Virus record (IMG/VR): IMGVR_UViG_3300017917_002374 | Span: 124,001 to 188,000 of that record | Length of the DNA stretch: 64,000 nt | Strand: one strand, 5' to 3' | Shown here: positions 23,219 to 30,544 of the stretch, in pieces | Numbering within the stretch: position 1 is the first letter of the stretch | How the letters are laid out: every line of letters starts with the position of its first letter | Position numbers and translations under genes: made by a program | Notes under the pieces: generated by a model | What the model was told of the DNA's origin: nothing | Seen by the model: the letters and a program-made list of their open reading frames with translations, nothing else | Databases searched by the model: none

Positions 23219-23762
23219 ATTAAATTCCAGTCCTGATAGATATACCTTTCAGTTGAACAATTATGTGCAACGTATGACCGAAGCAGGACGACTGGATGAT
23301 CCTCATGTGCAACGCATGATCAAGTTTTATAAAGACTGGGCTATTCGTGCTGCCGAAGCAGAAGCAGATCCTGCATTTCAACAAAACAATCTTGAATGGG
23401 ATCTGCGTACCACAGACTGGGTCAGAGAAAAATGTCAAAGCGACAGTTATGCACAAAATCTTTATGCTGCCTTGTGCAACATGCGTTGGCAAAAACGTGA
23501 GGTAATTCCTATTCTAAAAGATGAATATTGGACCTGTACCTGGCGCAGTGCAGGAGGTATTGTGGCAGACATACAAGGCAGAGGCGACTATATTGATTGG
23601 TACTGCTCAGGTATACAAAATAATATAAGTCTAGACGAACGAGAAAATCAAGACTGGCATAACAATGGTTATGTGCCAGAAGGTACTGTGACTGAAGAAA
23701 TTGAAAATGACATGTATGTACTAGGCTGGATTCATAGCCCTTACCCGGAGGATGACCAATGA
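23211..23762 (+). CDS. Hypothetical protein
   Basis: 183 aa, YAQNLYAALCN...DYIDWYCSG. Confidence 0.75.
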   Translation: MSKLNSSPDRYTFQLNNYVQRMTEAGRLDDPHVQRMIKFYKDWAIRAAEAEADPAFQQNNLEWDLRTTDWVREKCQSDSYAQNLYAALCNMRWQKREVIPILKDEYWTCTWRSAGGIVADIQGRGDYIDWYCSGIQNNISLDERENQDWHNNGYVPEGTVTEEIENDMYVLGWIHSPYPEDDQ

Positions 23763-23944
23763 AAAGAAGTTTCATGATTGACATGTTGATCTTGCTAGTG
23801 GTGTTTGTGGCCAGTGTAGGACTGCTGTTTTTGATTCCACAGCCCACACATCAAGTGATCAATTGCAGTCTGGCAGAAATTTCACCAGACTTCACTCCAG
23901 AAATGCGCAAGCAATGTAGAATGATTAGAGGAACCAAACTATGA
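23759..23944 (+). CDS. Small membrane protein
   Basis: N-terminal TM helix, CSLAEISPDF motif. Confidence 0.6.
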   Translation: MKRSFMIDMLILLVVFVASVGLLFLIPQPTHQVINCSLAEISPDFTPEMRKQCRMIRGTKL

Positions 23945-24408
23945 CAGAACTCAAAGCACGACCAGTAGTTAAAAATAAATTCTGGATAGTTGAACGTGAC
24001 GGTGAAAAGATTGCCACTATCCAGGCAGTGGATGAAGGCGGATTCGTTTTTGTGGACAACGAACAACGACAACCATATGCCAACATCAAAAGCATTCGTA
24101 ACAAACTAAACATTGTTTTTGATCGTCCTGAAAAACAAAAATCCGAAGTAACCAACGAAGTGTATGGCTTTCCTGCATCTACCAAAACCTATAACTGTTT
24201 GTACGATGTAAGCAAACGTCTGCCTATCTATACCAAGAACTTAAAGAGCAAGAGTTACTATTGTGCAGGACACTATGCAATAAAATTTAACAACACTTGG
24301 ACCAAGGCCTATTGTCCAAAACTGATTACCTTGCAACGATATCAGTTTCTAGGCCCTTACAAAAGCAAATCTGAACTGGATCTTGCTGTGGAGAATGCCC
24401 ATGGATAA
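23941..24408 (+). CDS. Hypothetical protein
   Basis: GAGG RBS, 155 aa. Confidence 0.75.
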   Translation: MTELKARPVVKNKFWIVERDGEKIATIQAVDEGGFVFVDNEQRQPYANIKSIRNKLNIVFDRPEKQKSEVTNEVYGFPASTKTYNCLYDVSKRLPIYTKNLKSKSYYCAGHYAIKFNNTWTKAYCPKLITLQRYQFLGPYKSKSELDLAVENAHG

Positions 24409-24619
24409 TTTCACTCATCATGTGAGCATGTTTAATGACCGTGTGCGAGCCATGAATCAAACTCACAAAAACGAACTGCGACTAACCGCAGTGGAAGCAA
24501 ACAACCTACTATCAGATATTGTGGCTGTGCTAGCACAAGTGTCCAGCTTGAAACAACAGTTAGACTCTGCTAGTGAACAAGTGGTAGAAGTGGTCATGGA
24601 TGGCGGCGGATTTAAATAA
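24401..24619 (+). CDS. Hypothetical protein
   Basis: GGAG RBS, ATG 24401. Confidence 0.65.
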   Translation: MDNFTHHVSMFNDRVRAMNQTHKNELRLTAVEANNLLSDIVAVLAQVSSLKQQLDSASEQVVEVVMDGGGFK

Positions 24620-24664
24620 TATGCCCACTTTATATCATAAATAAACAACAAGCAGGAACAGGAT

Positions 24665-24952
24665 ATGTCAAGACCAAAACCAACAGTGTTGTTAGAGTAC
24701 GTGAACAAGAGCAACTTTAAAAGTGAGCAGGTGCTCAGCAGCGAAGGAATCTGGGCAGTGTTCTATGATGGCAAGCCTATCAATCTCAAGAATCAAAATA
24801 TCTTGATTTCCTATCCAGGACCCAAGTACAAAAAAGTCAGTTTCAGCAACCCAGGGCATGCTATCAATCTAGCCAAGAAACTCAACACTCTGTTTAAGAC
24901 AGACAAATTTAGTGTGGTGATATTAAAACAAGGTGACCAAATCTTCCCTTAA
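24665..24952 (+). CDS. Hypothetical protein
   Basis: Preceded by TAAATA (24638-24643) and AGGA. Confidence 0.75.
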   Translation: MSRPKPTVLLEYVNKSNFKSEQVLSSEGIWAVFYDGKPINLKNQNILISYPGPKYKKVSFSNPGHAINLAKKLNTLFKTDKFSVVILKQGDQIFP

Positions 24953-25283
24953 GCCAGGACGTCAGCGTGACCACGAACAAACGCTGTTTAGAGGGCCACG
25001 TCCACGACAGATTTGGCAAAACCCTACTAATCCTGACAGTTTAAGACTTACCACAGAAGCATACAGTGTGCTGACCAAATACGAATGTGTGCCCAGTTAT
25101 CCTTTTAAGTTTACAGAAAGCATGAGCAACCGAATGCTATTACAACTTGACAGATTGATGACTGCGCCTTACTATATAGGTAGTCGTAAACAGATTCAGC
25201 TGTTAGGCGAAGCAGATGCCATCATGCTCAGTTTGCATGCAAATGATCTAGCACGATATTTGAATAACTTAGCAGAAAGTTAA
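24933..25283 (+). CDS. Hypothetical protein
   Basis: GTG-start ORF overlapping previous gene. Confidence 0.6.
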   Translation: MTKSSLKPGRQRDHEQTLFRGPRPRQIWQNPTNPDSLRLTTEAYSVLTKYECVPSYPFKFTESMSNRMLLQLDRLMTAPYYIGSRKQIQLLGEADAIMLSLHANDLARYLNNLAES

Positions 25284-25306
25284 CAAAAAGCATTTTGCCA
25301 AAAGAG

Positions 25307-25335
25307 TTGACGACAGGACTAAATAAACGTACAAT
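25307..25335 (+). promoter_or_regulatory. sigma70 promoter with embedded TAAATA, heading tRNA region
   Basis: TTGACG-N17-TACAAT; TAAATA at 25320-25325. Confidence 0.85.
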
Positions 25336-25342
25336 AGATACT

Positions 25343-25459
25343 ATGATGAAACACACTATTCTATCCGCTCATTATCAATTGCCTAATGTACAGGCAAATT
25401 GCCCAACCTTTATGGTTTCAATTGAGCGTGATCTAATTAAAGGAATGGGGTCTCGGTAG
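25343..25459 (+). CDS. Leaderless 38-aa putative attenuator leader peptide
   Basis: ATG 8 nt after the -10 box. MMKHTILSAHYQLPNVQANCPTFMVSIERDLIKGMGSR. Last codons form the antiterminator 5' strand. Confidence 0.65.
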   Translation: MMKHTILSAHYQLPNVQANCPTFMVSIERDLIKGMGSR

Positions 25460-25484
25460 AATCTAAGCAACAGGATAATACCCA

Positions 25485-25519
25485 AGACCCCAGGATTAAA
25501 ACCCTGGGGTTTTGTTTTT
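25485..25519 (+). terminator. Intrinsic terminator (attenuator) overlapping an antiterminator
   Basis: AGACCCCAGG-loop-CCTGGGGTTT followed by TGTTTTT. The 5' arm can instead pair with TGGGGTCT at 25446-25453. Confidence 0.85.
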
Positions 25520-25531
25520 AGAAAGGAAGAA

Positions 25532-25696
25532 ATGACAACTGAACAAGAGATACTGTCGTTTCAAAAAAAGTTAGAAGAACGCGATTTTGTTTTAGACGAT
25601 GGATTGCTTGCTCAATTGATTGCAGGTAAAATGGAAAGAATGCGCAAGCAGTCAGAATTCATAAAACAATTGCAAGACATTAAGAAACGACGATAG
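25532..25696 (+). CDS. Small hypothetical protein (54 aa)
   Basis: AAGGA RBS; MTTEQEILSFQKKLEERDF. Confidence 0.65.
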   Translation: MTTEQEILSFQKKLEERDFVLDDGLLAQLIAGKMERMRKQSEFIKQLQDIKKRR

Positions 25697-25796
25697 TACA
25701 GTGTGATGCGGAACGAGGCTGCGGCAACACTATAACTTGCCAAACGGGCGGAGCTGAGGATGAAGCTGTGGCGATAACGCAGTGGTAAAATTCAGA

Positions 25797-25877
25797 ATGA
25801 TAAAGCACATTCAAACACATGATGGCGGCCGGCGCCATGGGCGCACGTTACGGTGGCCCAGGAATGTGTTTTATCAT
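25797..25877 (+). ncRNA. Small structured RNA (long closing stem, two internal hairpins)
   Basis: 16-bp stem ATGATAAAGCACATTC/GAATGTGTTTTATCAT enclosing ATGGCG/CGCCAT and GGGC..CAC/GTG..GCCC. Confidence 0.55.
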
Positions 25878-25950
25878 ACACTTTGGATGAACAGATAAAT
25901 CTGACTCCGAATCAGACAGACTCCTGGTTGACAACAGCCCCCCAGAGTGT
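25878..25950 (+). ncRNA. tRNA-like element with Arg(CCG) anticodon stem-loop
   Basis: 9-bp closing stem ACACTTTGG/CCAGAGTGT and TCTGA-CTCCGAA-TCAGA. D and T arms degenerate, no CCA. Confidence 0.45.
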
Positions 25951-25968
25951 TACACTAAATAGAGTTTT

Positions 25969-26050
25969 GCCCATGTGGTGGAATGGTAGACACGCTAGTC
26001 TTAGGAACTAGTGCGAGAGCGTGGGGGTTCGAGTCCCTCCATGGGCACCA
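25969..26050 (+). tRNA. tRNA-Leu(TAG)
   Basis: CTAGT-CTTAGGA-ACTAG, long variable arm, GTTCGA, CCA. Confidence 0.95.
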
Positions 26051-26062
26051 TTAAATACGTGT

Positions 26063-26308
26063 ATGAAAGAACTGCTTAAAAATCTGCCTCAGATTCTAGG
26101 TGCCTTGCCTGAGATAGTAAAGTACCTCAAGTACATTCCTATTCTTATGGTACTAGGTGGATTAGGTTATCTAGCATATTTTTACATGCAAAATCACAAA
26201 GATCCATATGTGTGTGTTAACAATCAGGTATTTGAACAGTTACGAGTGGATAGCGATATCTATATTTTCAAAGGTGAAACCTGTGTTGATGCAAAAGATT
26301 TGAAATAA
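26063..26308 (+). CDS. Small membrane protein within tRNA array
   Basis: ATG 5 nt after TAAATA; one TM helix. Confidence 0.65.
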   Translation: MKELLKNLPQILGALPEIVKYLKYIPILMVLGGLGYLAYFYMQNHKDPYVCVNNQVFEQLRVDSDIYIFKGETCVDAKDLK

Positions 26309-26310
26309 TT

Positions 26311-26386
26311 GGGGGTATAGCTCAGCTGGGAGAGCGGCGGCTTTGCAAGCCGTAGGTCGCAGGTTCGATCCCTGTTACCTCCACCA
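26311..26386 (+). tRNA. tRNA-Ala(TGC)
   Basis: Loop TTTGCAA, G3:U70, CCA. Confidence 0.95.
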
Positions 26387-26393
26387 AATAAAT

Positions 26394-26470
26394 CCGAGTG
26401 TAGCGCAGCCTGGTAGCGCATCTGCTTTGGGAGCAGAGGGTCGGGAGTTCGAACCTCTCCACTCGGACCA
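26394..26470 (+). tRNA. tRNA-Pro(TGG)
   Basis: TCTGC-TTTGGGA-GCAGA, CCA. Confidence 0.95.
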
Positions 26471-26477
26471 ATTCTAT

Positions 26478-26553
26478 TGGGGATTCGCCAAGTTGGTAAG
26501 GCATCGGATTTTGATTCCGACATTCGGTGGTTCGAGTCCATCATCCCCAGCCA
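26478..26553 (+). tRNA. tRNA-Gln(TTG)
   Basis: TCGGA-TTTTGAT-TCCGA, CCA. Confidence 0.95.
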
Positions 26554-26554
26554 T

Positions 26555-26631
26555 GCGACCGTAGCTCAGTTGGATAGAGTACTGGCTTGCGAAGTCAGTG
26601 GTCGGAGGTTCGAGTCCTTCCGGTCGCACCA
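26555..26631 (+). tRNA. tRNA-Arg(GCG)
   Basis: CTGGC-TTGCGAA-GTCAG, CCA. Confidence 0.93.
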
Positions 26632-26647
26632 GTTCAAGGAGATAACC

Positions 26648-26824
26648 ATGAAACCTATTACATTTGAAAATCGTGTAAGTCACGAGCGTGTGATCTGTGA
26701 TGACGTGCGGCAGGTTCAGACCATTGACGGCGTTGAGTTTCTACAGGTTAGACGTCAGAATGAGCAACGACATTTTTTAATGCGCAAAGACAGTTTGCAA
26801 AAAATTGTTGATAAAAAGAAATAA
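26648..26824 (+). CDS. Small hypothetical protein within tRNA array
   Basis: AAGGAG RBS; MKPITFENRV. Confidence 0.7.
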   Translation: MKPITFENRVSHERVICDDVRQVQTIDGVEFLQVRRQNEQRHFLMRKDSLQKIVDKKK

Positions 26825-26828
26825 CAGT

Positions 26829-26905
26829 GGTGTTGGTAGCTCAATTGGTAGAGTTCTGGATTGTGATTCCAGTGGTTGCGGGTTCAAGCCCCGTCCATCA
26901 CCCCA
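26829..26905 (+). tRNA. tRNA-His(GTG)
   Basis: CTGGA-TTGTGAT-TCCAG, G-1:C73, CCA. Confidence 0.93.
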
Positions 26906-26907
26906 AA

Positions 26908-26983
26908 GCCAACTTAGCTGATGTGGTCATAGCGGCGGTCTGAAGAACCGTGGAAAGACGTTCGATTCGTCTAGTTGGCACCA
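26908..26983 (+). tRNA. tRNA-Phe(GAA)
   Basis: GCGGT-CTGAAGA-ACCGT, CCA. Confidence 0.93.
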
Positions 26984-26984
26984 A

Positions 26985-27431
26985 TTAACCTTTGAATTCG
27001 CGCCAGGCGTTACAACAGCCGCGAGCATCAACTTTAGTATCTAGTTTGAAATCTTTGGGCAGCTTTTTGTTTAGGTCATCAAACAATGAACAGATCTTGG
27101 TGTCTGCGCCAAAGTACAAACAGTTTTCGCAACGCACTTGTCCTAGTACATAACCAGATGCTTTGGGATCAACTGGTCTTTCAATGAACTCTTGATCGTC
27201 CTTGGGCTCACCGTTGATATAGAGTGCGCAGCTGGCATTAGCCACAACCTTGAAGCTCTTAGGGTAAATGTTACAGCGTTCTTTTCCTGGCATAAAATGC
27301 AAACAGGTACCACATTGTGCATGTTGAGTCACACCAGGTGGCGGATCCATGTACAAAAATGCATCACGAGCAACTTTAGGTCCACTGTCCTTGGCTTCAG
27401 TGACAATTTGAATAAAATCTTTAAGATCCAT
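26985..27431 (-). CDS. Cys-rich protein with tandem HiPIP-like repeats
   Basis: Two CxxCxxF..C..[YF]..V.A..C repeats; ATG 4 nt after TAAATA on minus strand. Confidence 0.6.
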   Translation of the reverse strand: MDLKDFIQIVTEAKDSGPKVARDAFLYMDPPPGVTQHAQCGTCLHFMPGKERCNIYPKSFKVVANASCALYINGEPKDDQEFIERPVDPKASGYVLGQVRCENCLYFGADTKICSLFDDLNKKLPKDFKLDTKVDARGCCNAWREFKG

Positions 27432-27444
27432 ACAGTATTTAGCT

Positions 27445-27518
27445 GCTCTCATAGTATAAAGGCATTACACTACATTGGTAATGTAGAAACTCTGGATCGT
27501 TACCAGATGAGAGCACCA
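27445..27518 (+). tRNA. tRNA-Thr(GGT)
   Basis: CTACA-TTGGTAA-TGTAG; T-loop ATCGTTA; CCA. Confidence 0.9.
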
Positions 27519-27520
27519 AT

Positions 27521-27594
27521 GCCCCTGTAGCTCAAAGGTAGAGCAATCGATTGATAATCGATAGACGTTGGATCGTTACCATCCGGGGGTACCA
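27521..27594 (+). tRNA. tRNA-Ile(GAT)
   Basis: ATCGA-TTGATAA-TCGAT; T-loop ATCGTTA; CCA. Confidence 0.9.
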
Positions 27595-27599
27595 AAAAC

Positions 27600-27675
27600 G
27601 GTAATGTAGCATAGTGGCCAATGCACCTCCTTCATACGGAGACTATCGCTGGTTCGAGTCCAGCCATTACCACCA
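27600..27675 (+). tRNA. tRNA-Met(CAT) (Ile2 identity not excluded)
   Basis: CTCC-TTCATAC-GGAG, CCA. Confidence 0.88.
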
Positions 27676-27677
27676 AA

Positions 27678-27754
27678 CGGCCCTTAGCTCAACTGGATAG
27701 AGTTCTGCGCTTCGAACGCAGCGGTTGTGGGTTCAAATCCTGCAGGGCCGGCCA
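27678..27754 (+). tRNA. tRNA-Arg(TCG)
   Basis: CTGCG-CTTCGAA-CGCAG, CCA. Confidence 0.93.
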
Positions 27755-27762
27755 AAGAATAC

Positions 27763-27850
27763 GGAAGTGTGCCAGAGTGGTTTAATGGAGCAGTCTTGAA
27801 AACTGTCGTACTGAAAGGTACCGTGGGTTCGAATCCTACCACTTCCGCCA
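27763..27850 (+). tRNA. tRNA-Ser(TGA)
   Basis: GCAGT-CTTGAAA-ACTGT, long variable arm, CCA. Confidence 0.95.
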
Positions 27851-27880
27851 GTATTAGCAAAATAGCAACAAAATAGGCGG

Positions 27881-27909
27881 TTGACCATTATTCAATCATT
27901 TGCTACACT
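27881..27909 (+). promoter_or_regulatory. sigma70 promoter inside tRNA array
   Basis: TTGACC-N17-TACACT just before tRNA-Asn. Confidence 0.75.
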
Positions 27910-27927
27910 ATTGAAAGTTAGAAACAT

Positions 27928-28003
27928 TGTCTCGTAGCTCAGTTGGTAGAGCAGGTGACTGTTAATCACCCTGTCGCTGGTTCGATCCCAGCCGAGACAG
28001 CCA
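27928..28003 (+). tRNA. tRNA-Asn(GTT)
   Basis: GGTGA-CTGTTAA-TCACC, CCA. Confidence 0.95.
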
Positions 28004-28009
28004 GTTTTT

Positions 28010-28084
28010 GCACCCATCATCTAGTGGTTAGGATATCGCCCTTTCACGGCGAGTACACCGGTTCGAATCCGGTTGGGTGTACCA
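28010..28084 (+). tRNA. tRNA-Glu(TTC)
   Basis: TCGCC-CTTTCAC-GGCGA, CCA. Confidence 0.95.
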
Positions 28085-28094
28085 GTTTAAAGTT

Positions 28095-28180
28095 GGGGAT
28101 GTGTGCCGAGCGGCGAAGGCAGCTGACTGTAAATCAGTGACAGAGAAACACCGTAGGTTCGATTCCTACCGTCCCCACCA
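28095..28180 (+). tRNA. tRNA-Tyr(GTA)
   Basis: CTGA-CTGTAAA-TCAG, variable arm, CCA. Confidence 0.93.
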
Positions 28181-28182
28181 AG

Positions 28183-28762
28183 TTCCGGTTACCACTTTCC
28201 TGAAAGTGGCGTATGGTAAACGAGAAAACCCAGGTGGCTATGGCACCTTTAGCGAAACATAGACTCTGCATTACGATGTGGTGTCTCCGGTGTTTCAGAC
28301 GACATAGCAGCGTGGACACTACGCGGCACAGTCCTTTTAGTGTTCGGACAGGGTAACAACTCCAGCTTGGGGGCGACCGTGGAAAAGCGTGGCCCAAGCA
28401 TAAAGGCAAGTGCTATAGATGACAACTGGGTATCGTGTGTGGACGCACACACTATGCGGGCACTCCCGGCCGGGGACGGGTCCTGATATAACCAACAGCG
28501 GCTTTGACACACTTAGCGGTGGACGTCTAAATTGGTACTATAGCACTTACCTTTATGTCAAGACGTGGGGGCGCCACCCCCTACTCTGGTCCGGAGGATG
28601 AGAAGACCGTGGTAGGTCAGGACCTTACTGTTTGGTGCAAACAGCGTTGGCAATACGAGAATCCTCTCTGGTCGGGGAGCGGGTGGGGGCATGCGTGATG
28701 TGGGCAGTGCAAAGACTGTTCACTGATGTGCTATAATAACCGCCGCAGAGAGGAAGCACCTA
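28183..28762 (+). ncRNA. Large structured ncRNA, GOLLD/ROOL-like candidate
   Basis: GC-rich, about 580 nt between tRNA-Tyr and tRNA-Asp. 20-nt long-range helix 28399-28418/28538-28557 with one mismatch, many hairpins, ends pair via CGGTTA/TAACCG. Confidence 0.65.
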
Positions 28763-28766
28763 TTCA

Positions 28767-28841
28767 GGTCTCAAAGTGTTCATGGACGCACGCCAGCCTG
28801 TCACGTTGGAAGAAGGGGATCGTTACCCCTTGGGACCGCCA
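28767..28841 (+). tRNA. tRNA-Asp(GTC)
   Basis: CCAGC-CTGTCAC-GTTGG; T-loop ATCGTTA; CCA. Confidence 0.92.
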
Positions 28842-28858
28842 GATAAATTGAGAAGACA

Positions 28859-29068
28859 ATGAGTGAATTTAAAGTATATTGGACCTACGGCGGTGAGAGC
28901 CATGGAGAAGCGTTTCAGGACGTGACCCAGGCATTGGATCGCTGCCAACAACTAAGAAACAGTGGTCGTAGATTTGTGACCATGGCCAGTGAAATTGATG
29001 ACATGGTTGGAGAGTTTGGAGTAACAGAAACGGACTCCACTTACAACTGGAAAAAACGGAGAATCTAA
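28859..29068 (+). CDS. Hypothetical protein
   Basis: 69-aa ORF within array. Confidence 0.7.
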   Translation: MSEFKVYWTYGGESHGEAFQDVTQALDRCQQLRNSGRRFVTMASEIDDMVGEFGVTETDSTYNWKKRRI

Positions 29069-29313
29069 TGAGAGATTATACGCCAAAAATTGCCAAGGCA
29101 GATCTTGAGCATGGTGCATACTATGCGGGTCGCTGTCGCAATGCACACGAAGCACGTTGGAACGCCAGCATACAAAAGTTCGTGCATTGGCGTACCAAAT
29201 TCAATCATACTTTTTTAGAAGAAATTTGTCATCCAGAAGACGAACAACAGTTTGATGTGTTTGTGGTTGAAGCAAAATTAGATAGACCAGAACGAGAAAT
29301 TCCATTAAAATAA
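29068..29313 (+). CDS. Hypothetical protein
   Basis: TAATG-coupled; YYAGRCRNA..ARW. Confidence 0.7.
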   Translation: MRDYTPKIAKADLEHGAYYAGRCRNAHEARWNASIQKFVHWRTKFNHTFLEEICHPEDEQQFDVFVVEAKLDRPEREIPLK

Positions 29314-29366
29314 ATTTTTACACAAGGAGAGTCCAAAATGGACAGTGACAAGAGTGACAAACGCCC

Positions 29367-29441
29367 GGGGGTGTAGCTCAGAGGAAGAGCAACTGGCTTT
29401 TAACCAGTAGGCCGAGATATCGTAATTCTCCACCCTCACCA
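29367..29441 (+). tRNA. tRNA-Lys(TTT)
   Basis: ACTGG-CTTTTAA-CCAGT; atypical T-loop ATCGTAA; CCA. Confidence 0.85.
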
Positions 29442-29528
29442 TATGAAAACACATTATAGCGGATTTCGCAAGTATAAGTCGCATTCTAAAGAGTGCCCTT
29501 GAGATTGGATATAGTGTGTTTCCATATG
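29440..29528 (+). ncRNA. Small multibranched RNA between tRNA-Lys and tRNA-Cys
   Basis: 19-nt closing stem CATATGAAAACACATTATA/TATAGTGTGTTTCCATATG with internal hairpins such as GCATTC-TAAA-GAGTGC. Confidence 0.55.
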
Positions 29529-29605
29529 CAACGGTGGCAGAGAGGCCCAATGCAAGGGACTGCAAATCCCTAAAACCGTGAGTTCGAATCTCACCCGTTG
29601 CTCCA
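29528..29605 (+). tRNA. tRNA-Cys(GCA)
   Basis: AGGGA-CTGCAAA-TCCCT, U73, CCA. Confidence 0.93.
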
Positions 29606-29627
29606 TTTCAAACTCTAGGAGGTCACA

Positions 29628-30095
29628 ATGCCGTGGATAGAAAATGTTGCTGCCACTGATGTGTCTCAGGGTTTTCATCATGCAGCAGGCGATAACAGCA
29701 TGCTGATTCAAATTGCCGATCCTGCAGGTTGGTTCCCCACTCCTAAATATCAGTTCAAAGAAATACACCAGTTTGAATTCTTGGACGCAGAGGACTCAGA
29801 TGGCTTTCCTGAGGAAGCCAAGTGCTCACATGCACAAGCCGCTGAACTGGTTCGCCTGCTTCAGCATGCACTTGACAATCGCATGAATGTGGTTGTACAC
29901 TGTATGGCTGGTATTTGTCGTAGTGGTGCGGTATGCGAAGTTGGTGTGATGTTGGGATTTCAAGATACTGAAAGGTTCCGTCAACCCAATCTGCGTGTGA
30001 AACATCGCATGATGCAGGCACTGGGCTGGTCATACAACGCAGATGAACAGCCAGATCCAGACAGCTGGCGCAATTTTAAATTAGGAAACATATGA
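29628..30095 (+). CDS. Cys-based (PTP/DSP-fold) phosphatase
   Basis: VVVHCMAGICRS CX5R motif. Confidence 0.88.
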   Translation: MPWIENVAATDVSQGFHHAAGDNSMLIQIADPAGWFPTPKYQFKEIHQFEFLDAEDSDGFPEEAKCSHAQAAELVRLLQHALDNRMNVVVHCMAGICRSGAVCEVGVMLGFQDTERFRQPNLRVKHRMMQALGWSYNADEQPDPDSWRNFKLGNI

Positions 30096-30544
30096 AAATT
30101 GGTTTTAGTTTTGGCCGTTGTGTGGCCAGTATTGTGCGTGGCGAAGTGAACATTGATGATGTGTTGTGCATTATTGCTCGCACTCACATGCCCAGTGCTG
30201 CTGCTGTCAAAGCCGTGATTCAATCATACCTTTATGAACCTAGCTATCTAATGGGACTGGACGCTAACACATGCGAAGCTGTGGGACTAGAGCTGTTTAT
30301 ATCTGGCAAGGTACTAGAACCAAGAGCCAATGGCATTGGTGTGATCAAGGTGCCACGTGATTATGTGTGGATGGATCTTTATCCTACTGTGGCGGACACA
30401 CAAAATGCAGGCGTTCGTACTGCATGGGAAAATTATCGTATGATGATAGAGCTAGCAGAGCATGTGCCGGATGGTGATTACCAACAGGAAGTATATCAAC
30501 ATTCACCTAAAATGAATCTTAATGATGATGGCCAAGAAATCTAA
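30092..30544 (+). CDS. Hypothetical protein
   Basis: MKIGFSFGRCVASIV; coupled. Confidence 0.75.
   Translation: MKIGFSFGRCVASIVRGEVNIDDVLCIIARTHMPSAAAVKAVIQSYLYEPSYLMGLDANTCEAVGLELFISGKVLEPRANGIGVIKVPRDYVWMDLYPTVADTQNAGVRTAWENYRMMIELAEHVPDGDYQQEVYQHSPKMNLNDDGQEI

Follow-up and report, generated by a model that had tools for sequence, protein, structure and literature searches.

The window analysed here, a 64,000-nucleotide stretch of a 355-kb contig from an uncultured giant phage, contains a cluster of 18 tRNA genes preceded by a compact unit composed of a promoter, a short open reading frame and an intrinsic terminator. A sequence-only reading of the window had proposed that this unit is a leader-peptide transcription attenuator that heads the tRNA array and senses tRNA depletion. 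We therefore sought to determine whether its components are present and conserved in related phages. The locus is organized as follows:

25307-25335, + strand: sigma70-type promoter, with -35 TTGACG (25307-25312), a 17-nt spacer holding the family-conserved CTAAATAAA (25319-25327) and -10 TACAAT (25330-25335)
25343-25459, + strand: leader ORF of 38 codons plus TAG (MMKHTILSAHYQLPNVQANCPTFMVSIERDLIKGMGSR)
25379-25397, + strand: hairpin in the middle of the ORF (TTGCCT / AGGCAA), possibly a pause or folding element
25446-25492, + strand: predicted antiterminator hairpin, pairing 25446-25453 with 25485-25492, 25455-25458 with 25479-25482 and 25461-25464 with 25473-25476, and containing the stop codon (25457-25459)
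25483-25519, + strand: intrinsic terminator, with stem 25483-25494 / 25503-25514, an 8-nt loop and a T tract to 25519
25532-25696, + strand: first downstream gene, encoding a 54-aa helical, charged protein, with the ribosome-binding site AAGGAAG just after the T tract
25697-25925, + strand: conserved structured RNA of unknown family (RNA X)
25928-25956, + strand: sigma70-type promoter of the tRNA array (TTGACA, 17 nt, TACACT with an extended TG)
25969-29605, + strand: array of 18 tRNA genes identified with ARAGORN and Rfam, with no Trp, Gly or Val tRNA in the window

All of the features proposed in the sequence-only reading were found at their assigned positions. The promoter scores 10/12 in a promoter scan, and the ATG lies 7 nt after the -10 box, suggesting that the mRNA is probably leaderless. 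The segment TGGGGTCT (25446-25453) is the exact complement of AGACCCCA (25485-25492), and the antiterminator hairpin is longer than had been proposed, with 8+4+4 pairs. It folds at -21.9 kcal/mol (z -4.86), whereas the terminator, a 12-pair stem of which 7 pairs are GC, folds at -20.5 kcal/mol (z -4.81), and the two structures overlap in 25483-25492. This terminator is the only + strand terminator call in 23500-30500. Pairing of the upstream 100 nt with the terminator 5' arm is better than in dinucleotide shuffles (E -19.0, z -3.0, p 0.01). The antiterminator forms in the lowest-energy fold of the transcript cut before the terminator 3' arm, although in the full-length lowest-energy fold 25446-25453 pairs with codons 3-10.

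One correction is required, as the unit does not directly head the tRNAs. The gene immediately after the terminator is the 54-aa ORF, followed by RNA X, and the first tRNA starts only at 25969. No + strand promoter was called between 25335 and 25928, but the tRNA array has its own promoter (10/12) 13 nt upstream of the first tRNA, an equivalent of which is seen by eye in several relatives at the 3' end of one of our alignments (A3). The attenuator can thus at most add to array transcription. A further internal promoter, also noted in the sequence-only reading, lies at 27881-27909. The 54-aa protein has no Pfam match and only weak PHROG matches, and Pfam and PHROG searches assigned no function to the leader peptide or the flanking genes. 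For RNA X, nhmmer gave 24 matches among the loci collected, several being the same contig retrieved twice, and RNAalifold predicts 24 pairs, 15 of them with compensatory changes. Rfam gave no family for RNA X or for the unit, with no match other than tRNAs at E<=1 in 24500-30000, nor at the units in four related loci.

Conservation of the unit and its alternative pairing

We identified 40 homologous units through two motifs and 79 more through a terminator pattern that is blind to the peptide, all in IMG/VR contigs related to the one studied here, and the unit is conserved in over 100 related uncultured jumbo-phage contigs. In the 47 loci scanned (those of the first 40 units), wherever flanking tRNAs were included the unit is co-oriented with the main tRNA array and lies 250-900 nt upstream of it. 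A homologous 42-55-aa gene follows the terminator in 26/40 units. No cultured phage carrying the unit was found in GenBank phage searches by megablast, blastn and tblastn with the window unit, a relative's unit and a leader peptide, which gave nothing or only tRNA or chance hits. The nearest cultured relative, Sinorhizobium phage Phosso, has a homologue of the upstream 95-aa gene but no tRNA array or unit there. A scan of bacterial and archaeal genomes with the terminator pattern gave 120 chance hits and no family member. The promoter, including the spacer motif, is conserved in all homologous units. With regard to a T4-type late promoter, the spacer motif TAAATAAA is not enriched in the window (3 found, 4.9 expected).

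The upstream segment pairs with the terminator 5' arm better than dinucleotide shuffles in 36/40 units (median z -3.8) and in 78/79 units (median z -3.9), that is, in 114 of 119 units. Among the first 40, the automatic hairpin caller picked an inner hairpin in 4 units, three of which pair by eye over 11 bp and one over 7 bp. On a structure-blind MAFFT alignment of 29 units, 87.8% of cells pair and 7 of 11 pairs show double changes, with a covariation score of 0.328 against 0.225 in shuffles (0/500 reaching it), while sliding the partner by one column drops pairing to 56-67%. The terminator is 95.3% paired across 29 homologues. Covariation was counted on one subfamily only, since a single alignment of all subfamilies misaligned the 5' strand because the helix register differs between them. 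Indeed, different subfamilies use different registers and sequences: GGGTCC/GGACCC, AGGGTTCTTA/TAAGAACCCT, AGGGTTTAAGT/ACTTAAACCCT, CCTGGGG+TATAGAA/TTCTATA+CCCCAGG, and TGGGGTCT/AGACCCCA in the window. Transcripts cut before the terminator 3' arm fold into the antiterminator in all 9 cases examined.

The stop codon lies inside the antiterminator hairpin in all units, -4 to +20 nt after the paired 5' segment and 16-30 nt before the terminator stem. In E. coli that distance leaves a terminator functional, with about 90% efficiency at 28 bp and under 10% at 5 bp (PMC4824070).

The leader ORF is open in 119/119 units, whereas the other five frames carry 1.4-4.3 stops, and compensating frameshifts restore the same stop codon in two units. 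The ATG is 6-11 nt after the -10 box in 46 units. Translation signals are nonetheless non-canonical: besides the leaderless start in these 46 units, 69 units have a long 5' UTR, in which 38 have a Shine-Dalgarno-like motif, mostly 14-20 nt from the ATG. An alternative possibility is a non-coding riboswitch-like leader or small RNA, in which the structured body is an aptamer or trans-acting RNA, the antiterminator/terminator pair is its expression platform and the ORF is incidental. The whole transcript is strongly structured (z -5.1), internal hairpins recur in homologues, including a GGC/GCC-type hairpin at the place equivalent to 25379-25397 whose conservation was judged by eye only, and the terminated RNA of about 175 nt would be abundant. 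However, the single open frame, the compensated frameshifts, the fixed distance of the ATG from the -10 box, the frame-specific amino-acid composition described below and the lack of an Rfam match in the regions searched make this explanation very unlikely.

Amino-acid composition of the leader peptides

The window's peptide contains 19 of the 20 amino acids and lacks Trp, which is weak evidence in this window alone, as 13 of 152 small ORFs in the window also reach 19. Across the family, however, it is a strong property. Of 119 distinct leader peptides (median 47 aa), 95 carry all 20 amino acids, 20 carry 19 and 4 carry 18, while the null expectation is 0.6-4.6% per peptide, or 3% even when using the family's own composition. 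The other five frames of the same DNA reach all 20 in 0-8 of 119. Among clusters below 50% identity, 16/30 are complete (binomial 8.5e-17), although the homologous sequences are related and the p-values therefore overstate independence. Interestingly, Cys occurs exactly once in 84% of peptides and is absent in 6.7% (Poisson expectation 36%), and its position differs between close relatives. In 75 of the 95 complete sets, all amino acids are already present upstream of the antiterminator, against 20.7 expected. Leaders also use 34.9 distinct codons against 28.4, and both codon boxes of Leu, Ser and Arg in 62% against 11%.

As proposed in the sequence-only reading, all 18 downstream tRNAs in the window have a cognate or wobble codon in the leader, whereas random 38-codon gene windows cover 12.1 on average and none of 20000 covered all 18. 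Across loci, coverage of individual tRNA species is above the gene background (0.89 against 0.72) but no better than with leaders swapped between loci (p 0.2), using a wobble rule for A34 that was too strict. Selection is seen at the amino-acid level, not at the level of matching each phage tRNA, and the 18/18 match in the window is therefore partly a by-product of amino-acid completeness.

We expected purifying selection on the peptide and did not find it: pN/pS is about 0.96 over the N-terminal part, with a second value of 0.77, by a crude Nei-Gojobori count on a MAFFT peptide alignment. We therefore do not favor, as the main explanation, an independent small gene encoding a micro-protein that acts in trans, with the hairpin around the stop codon serving as an RNA-stability or termination-context element and readthrough being mere leakage. 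The promoter-ORF-terminator layout is complete, gene callers predict 27 such proteins in public data, all labelled hypothetical, and a few residues are conserved. Yet the C-terminal tail is read in different frames in different lineages while its nucleotides are kept, and the hairpin shares bases with the terminator arm and covaries with it. Moreover, in the window no promoter call precedes the following gene or RNA X, so both depend on readthrough, and in relatives they follow 13-35 nt after the terminator. A folded micro-protein also gives no reason for one of each amino acid at shifting positions, and we consider this reading improbable.

Part of the peptide is conserved, which a general sensor does not need. 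Trp is nearly invariant (>90% of columns) and, 8-12 residues later, S-N-D-R-T-P-E is the consensus in most subfamilies, ending about 10-12 nt before the paired segment, which is the distance of a ribosome's leading edge. This raises the possibility of a specific arrest peptide, in the manner of TnaC or the Erm leaders, that stalls the ribosome in response to a particular small molecule, factor or drug, with the stall position setting the choice between antiterminator and terminator and the all-20 composition being secondary. Known translation-stress attenuators work this way (PMC9226507, PMC6310831). However, the window's copy and its closest subfamily lack DRTPE, and the window's copy also lacks Trp, yet they keep the switch and 19-20 amino acids. 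The motif codons also lie in predicted RNA helices, so RNA-level constraint could explain them, and an arrest peptide does not explain the moving Cys and His positions or the frame-specific composition. We regard it as unlikely, though less so than the two alternatives above.

A candidate attenuator responding to decoding capacity

Based on these computational results, which support the idea of a multivalent attenuator put forward in the sequence-only reading, we suggest that the unit is a ribosome-mediated transcription attenuator of the trp/his/ilv kind, but with a leader peptide that samples all amino acids instead of repeating one. In the absence of experimental or transcriptomic evidence, we give this explanation a probability of roughly 0.6, with translation of the ORF, the direction of control, the nature of the stall signal and the role of the tRNAs, rather than the small protein or RNA X, as the relevant output all being inferred. 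In this model, transcription starts at the promoter at 25307-25335 and the 5'-terminal AUG is translated at once. With no ribosome in the way, the nascent RNA would fold into the long antiterminator hairpin, tying up the 5' arm of the terminator and allowing RNA polymerase to read on into the 54-aa gene, RNA X and the tRNA array. A ribosome that keeps pace with the polymerase would reach the last codons and the stop codon and melt or cover the 5' strand of the hairpin, such that the terminator forms about 25 nt further on and transcription ends. As the roughly 35 codons ahead of the hairpin include at least one codon for nearly every amino acid, a shortage of any charged tRNA, or a general slowing of initiation or elongation, would delay the ribosome and raise readthrough, resulting in negative feedback from decoding capacity onto the translation-related locus of the phage. 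It should be noted that a single codon per amino acid is a much weaker sensor than the codon runs of classical attenuators.

Phage tRNA arrays are currently discussed as codon-usage adaptation, as replacements for degraded host tRNAs, or as decoys against tRNA-cleaving defences, while the control of their expression is essentially unknown. More tentatively, and somewhat less likely than not, we speculate that the leader peptide is kept by selection to contain every amino acid and acts as a 20-valent probe of decoding capacity, with readthrough rising whenever any aminoacyl-tRNA runs short, whether through decay of host tRNAs during infection, host anticodon nucleases or starvation; the link to anticodon nucleases is speculation. 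This would be an inducible, self-tuning tRNA supply, a kind of sensor not described in cells or viruses, and the first attenuator built to report on the whole aminoacyl-tRNA pool rather than on one amino acid. The unit also offers a compact natural part, under 200 nt, for sensing translation stress, and compositional completeness of a short ORF without sequence conservation provides a new signature for finding regulatory small ORFs.

The closest known systems are the leader-peptide attenuators of amino-acid operons (trp, his, leu, thr, pheA, and the multivalent ilvGMEDA and thr leaders of enterobacteria). Similarly to these, the unit has a short ORF next to the promoter, an intrinsic terminator, an antiterminator that shares the terminator's 5' arm, and an ORF end and stop codon placed so that a terminating ribosome prevents the antiterminator, while a delayed ribosome would give readthrough. 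It differs in having no run of codons for one or a few amino acids but about one codon for each of the 20 in 38-50 codons, with positions free to move, in being encoded by a phage, in the probably leaderless mRNA of 46 of the 119 units, in an untranslated default that appears to be the antiterminator rather than a 1:2 plus terminator state, and in a proposed regulated region that holds a small protein, a structured RNA and a tRNA array rather than biosynthetic enzymes. Attenuators that respond to translation inhibitors through stalling on a leader ORF (erm/cat-type leaders, Bacillus subtilis vmlR, Listeria hflXr; PMC9226507, PMC6310831) likewise sense impaired translation as such and answer by reading through a terminator into a gene that restores translation, but they are short, with defined arrest motifs and drug dependence, whereas here no drug link is known and the distinctive feature is the compositional completeness of the peptide.

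T-box riboswitches share a terminator/antiterminator decision that reports tRNA charging status and controls translation-related genes, but they bind one uncharged tRNA directly and involve no ORF, while the element proposed here senses through a ribosome, and no T-box match was found by Rfam in the regions searched. Finally, as in the TnaC arrest peptide of the tryptophanase operon, a conserved Trp lies 8-12 residues (about 12 in the subfamily first found) before a conserved Pro near the end of a short leader peptide in most family members. [quoted passage not shown]

Architecture of the locus and its relatives

All features listed in the sequence-only reading, namely a sigma70-type promoter, a short leader ORF, and an intrinsic terminator whose 5' arm can pair with the end of that ORF, are present in the sequence. 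The locus is organized as follows:

25307-25312 and 25330-25335: promoter, TTGACG and TACAAT separated by a 17-nt spacer
25343-25459: leader ORF of 38 codons ending in TAG, with its ATG 7 nt after the -10 box
25446-25492: antiterminator hairpin of 8+4+4 pairs, with the stop codon (25457-25459) in its second helix
25483-25514, + strand: terminator, a 12-pair stem followed by TTTTGTTTTT
25532-25696: ORF of 54 aa, preceded by a ribosome-binding site
25697-25925: conserved structured RNA of unknown family (RNA X), about 230 nt
25928-25956: second sigma70-type promoter
25969-29605: tRNA-Leu and 17 more tRNAs

The leader promoter is one of the six best sigma70-type matches (10/12) in 23500-30500, and the terminator is the only + strand terminator call in this region. 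TGGGGTCT (25446-25453) is the exact complement of AGACCCCA (25485-25492), which is the lower half of the terminator's 5' arm. Folding shows that the competing structure is larger than this 8-nt pairing, which was all that the sequence-only reading described. The antiterminator hairpin folds at -21.9 kcal/mol (z -4.9 against shuffles) and the terminator at -20.5 kcal/mol (z -4.8); the two share 25483-25492 and cannot coexist. In the transcript cut before the terminator's 3' arm, the antiterminator is part of the lowest-energy fold. In one respect the sequence-only reading, which placed the attenuator at the head of the tRNA array, needs correction, since the terminator is followed not by a tRNA but by the 54-aa ORF, RNA X and a second promoter.

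Interestingly, the spacer of the leader promoter (25319-25327) carries a (C/A)TAAATAAA motif that is conserved at the same place in all homologous promoters. This motif is unusual for a sigma70 spacer and is reminiscent of T4-type late promoters (TATAAATA), and copies also recur upstream of some units, although it is not enriched in the window (3 found, 4.9 expected). A further strong sigma70-type match (TTGACA, 17 nt, TACTAT; 25147-25175) lies inside the upstream 116-aa gene. Transcripts from it would carry the leader ATG internally, without a ribosome-binding site, and might bypass the ribosome-dependent control. This 116-aa ORF (24933-25283) starts at a GTG that overlaps the end of a 95-aa gene (24665-24952), and as it is conserved over its full length in 136 related loci, the overlapping start seems real.

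The window is part of IMGVR_UViG_3300017917_002374, a 355-kb contig whose DNA polymerase is of the T4 type and is 44-50% identical to those of the jumbo phages Phosso, Atu_ph07, GAP32 and CBB. No GenBank phage record matches the unit by DNA or peptide, whereas the flanking genes have hundreds of relatives in IMG/VR. Homologous units were recovered in three ways, including an nhmmer profile and two exact motifs, which gave 33 and 15 loci. After removal of duplicates and non-family hits, 119 distinct leader ORFs remained. In the 47 loci scanned for tRNAs, the unit is on the same strand as the main tRNA array wherever flanking tRNAs are present in the sequence. It lies 250-900 nt upstream of that array, and a few tRNAs (Met, Arg-TCT, Leu-TAA, Ile-TAT) often lie further upstream.

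Conservation of the alternative pairing and of the reading frame

We sought to determine whether the 100 nt upstream of the terminator contain a segment that pairs with the terminator's 5' arm better than dinucleotide shuffles do, using an alignment-free test. In the first set, 36 of 40 units pass at p<=0.05 (median z of -3.8), the four failures being cases in which our script picked an inner hairpin. In the set found without reference to the peptide, 78 of 79 units pass (median z of -3.9). The window itself scores E -19.0, z -3.0, p 0.01. Covariation was counted on a structure-blind MAFFT alignment of 29 units of one subfamily. The antiterminator is paired in 87.8% of cells, and 7 of 11 pairs carry changes on both sides (30 cells). 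The covariation score is 0.328 against 0.225 in shuffles, none of 500 shuffles reaching the observed value, and sliding the partner by one column lowers pairing to 56-67%. On the same alignment the terminator is 95.3% paired with covariation 0.125.

Between subfamilies the helix has changed sequence and even register while staying complementary: GGGGTCC/GGACCCC, AGGGTCC/GGACCCT, AGGGTTCTTA/TAAGAACCCT, AGGGTTTAAGT/ACTTAAACCCT, a 13-pair GGGGTCTTGGATA/TATCCAAGGCCTC, CCTGGGG+TATAGAA/TTCTATA+CCCCAGG in the subfamily closest to the window, and TGGGGTCT/AGACCCCA in the window. In five of nine full-length folds the antiterminator even beats the terminator, and the untranslated default therefore seems to be readthrough.

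The ORF is open in all 119 units, while the other five frames of the same DNA carry 1.4-4.3 stops on average. In the related loci L164 and L166, the ORFs differ by two compensating single-base indels that return the frame to the same AGT TAA. A purely non-coding RNA is contradicted by the frame-specific signals. Start signals fall into two groups. In 46 units the ATG is 6-11 nt after the -10 box, so the mRNA is effectively leaderless. In 69 units there is a 5' UTR of more than 30 nt (mostly 41-66), starting with a hairpin in those examined by eye, and the stretch before the ATG is A-rich; 38 of these 69 have a Shine-Dalgarno-like motif, mostly unusually far from the ATG (-14 to -20).

The stop codon always lies inside the antiterminator hairpin, -4 to +20 nt after the paired 5' segment (typically 7-12 nt) and 16-30 nt before the terminator stem. 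In E. coli, a stop codon 28 bp before a terminator allows about 90% termination and one 5 bp before allows under 10%, and about 10-15 nt of free RNA beyond the A site are needed for the terminator to fold (PMC4824070). A ribosome at this stop codon would therefore cover the 5' strand of the antiterminator and still leave the terminator free to fold.

Amino-acid composition of the leader peptide

The amino-acid sequence of the leader is barely constrained, with a crude count giving pN/pS of 0.96 upstream of the conserved motif and 0.77 downstream. In an alignment of 47 diverse members the mean column identity is 26%, with only Met1 invariant and one Trp nearly invariant. After the last conserved codons the peptide tail is read in different frames in different lineages, although the nucleotides that pair with the terminator arm are kept. 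A micro-protein acting in trans is hard to reconcile with pN/pS near 1, with this frame-independent tail and with the dependence of downstream genes on readthrough. A conserved core (Trp, then 8-12 residues, then SNDRTPE, ending about 10-12 nt before the paired segment) does exist in most subfamilies, which keeps alive the possibility of a specific arrest peptide. However, the window's subfamily lacks the motif, and these codons also lie in predicted RNA helices.

In contrast to the sequence, the composition is extraordinary. Of the 119 peptides (36-53 aa, median 47), 95 contain all 20 amino acids, 20 contain 19 and 4 contain 18; in the peptide-blind subset 63 of 79 are complete. Same-length windows of this phage's proteins have 16.2-17.6 distinct residues and reach 20 in 0.6-4.6% of cases, and the family's own flattened composition gives only 3%. 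The other five frames of the same DNA, which share base composition and phylogeny, reach 20 in 0-8 of 119. Among representatives below 50% identity, 16 of 30 are complete (binomial 8.5e-17), and below 40% identity 6 of 11 are complete (1e-6).

Rare residues are under-dispersed. Cys occurs exactly once in 84% of peptides and is absent in 6.7%, where a Poisson model expects 36%, while His is never absent, where 27% is expected. In one close subfamily the single Cys sits at five or more different positions, which points to selection for presence, not for position. Of the 95 complete peptides, 75 are already complete in the codons upstream of the antiterminator, where random residue order would give 20.7 and no simulation exceeded 37. 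At the codon level the leaders use 34.9 distinct codons against 28.4 in gene windows and both codon boxes of Leu, Ser and Arg in 62% against 11%, and they have low codon adaptation.

The window's copy is a somewhat eroded member of the family, with 38 codons, 19 amino acids, no Trp and no SN.R motif. On its own, its diversity is only modest evidence, as the sequence-only reading had cautioned, since 13 of 152 small ORFs in the window also reach 19. Its codons do cover all 18 tRNAs of the window, where the null mean is 12.1 and none of 20000 windows reached 18. Across 65 loci the coverage is 0.89 against 0.72 for gene windows, but it is not tuned to each locus (swap test p 0.2). The selected property is therefore amino-acid completeness rather than a match to each tRNA species. 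Only two of the 119 leaders lack a Trp codon, those of the window and of L166, and they belong to the loci whose visible tRNA arrays (18 and 29 genes) lack tRNA-Trp, an anecdotal observation (n=2) from truncated loci.

Inferred attenuation mechanism and downstream products

Based on these results, we infer that the unit is most likely a ribosome-mediated attenuator. On a nascent transcript without a closely following ribosome, the antiterminator would form and the polymerase would read on, whereas a ribosome that reaches the end of the ORF in time would melt or cover the antiterminator's 5' strand, so that the terminator forms. Because the sensing part of the ORF contains every amino acid, a shortage of any charged tRNA, or slow initiation or elongation in general, would delay the ribosome and increase readthrough. 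This is the model of the sequence-only reading and the comparative data fit it well; however, all of the evidence is computational, the homologous sequences are not independent, and translation itself, the direction of control and the physiological trigger are inferred. The element conforms to leader-peptide attenuators in four structural criteria, but lacks their enriched regulatory codons, which it replaces with full coverage of the 20 amino acids. It is not a T-box, based on Rfam, and is not TnaC-like. Functionally it also resembles the translation-stress attenuators of resistance genes such as vmlR and hflXr (PMC9226507, PMC6310831). In the open full text searched, we found no description of a leader peptide with all amino acids or of an attenuator at a phage tRNA array.

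The regulated output is uncertain. In 26 of 40 units the terminator is followed, 15-35 nt after the T tract, by a charged, helical protein of 42-55 aa (window 25532-25696; e.g., L161:3679-3837 and L165:285-437 in related loci). This protein belongs to a conserved family (..HTLTPEQR..LI..KLERA..) of no known function, with no Pfam match and only weak PHROG matches to families of unknown function. In most of the remaining units (10 clear cases), about a quarter of units, the terminator is followed directly by RNA X, which may thus be the main regulated product. RNA X (also L166:1697-1956, L164:3990-4250, L195:5166-5437 and others) gave 24 nhmmer matches among the loci collected, several being the same contig represented twice. 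RNAalifold predicts 24 pairs, 15 of them with compensatory changes, including a 15-pair long helix, and there is no Rfam match at E<=1. In the window no promoter-like site precedes either product.

The tRNA array, on the other hand, is not solely dependent on the leader. Sigma70-type promoters with an extended TG lie inside the tRNA region at 25928-25956 and 27881-27909, the first being 13 nt upstream of tRNA-Leu, with an equivalent promoter seen by eye in several relatives. The attenuator could therefore only modulate array transcription. The tRNA arrays of related phages also contain GOLLD RNA (RF02032, 196-197 bits, E about 1e-54; L166:6249-6711 and L164:1132-1594) with a tRNA nested in it, while the window's array has no GOLLD match. 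In the related loci L163, L165, L168, L178 and L187, ARAGORN calls tmRNA-like genes (flagged tmRNA*) near the units, with tag peptides such as ANDEQFALAA and ANANTKGEVAINARGVKIARRAAVLA, suggesting that these phages carry further translation-rescue RNAs.
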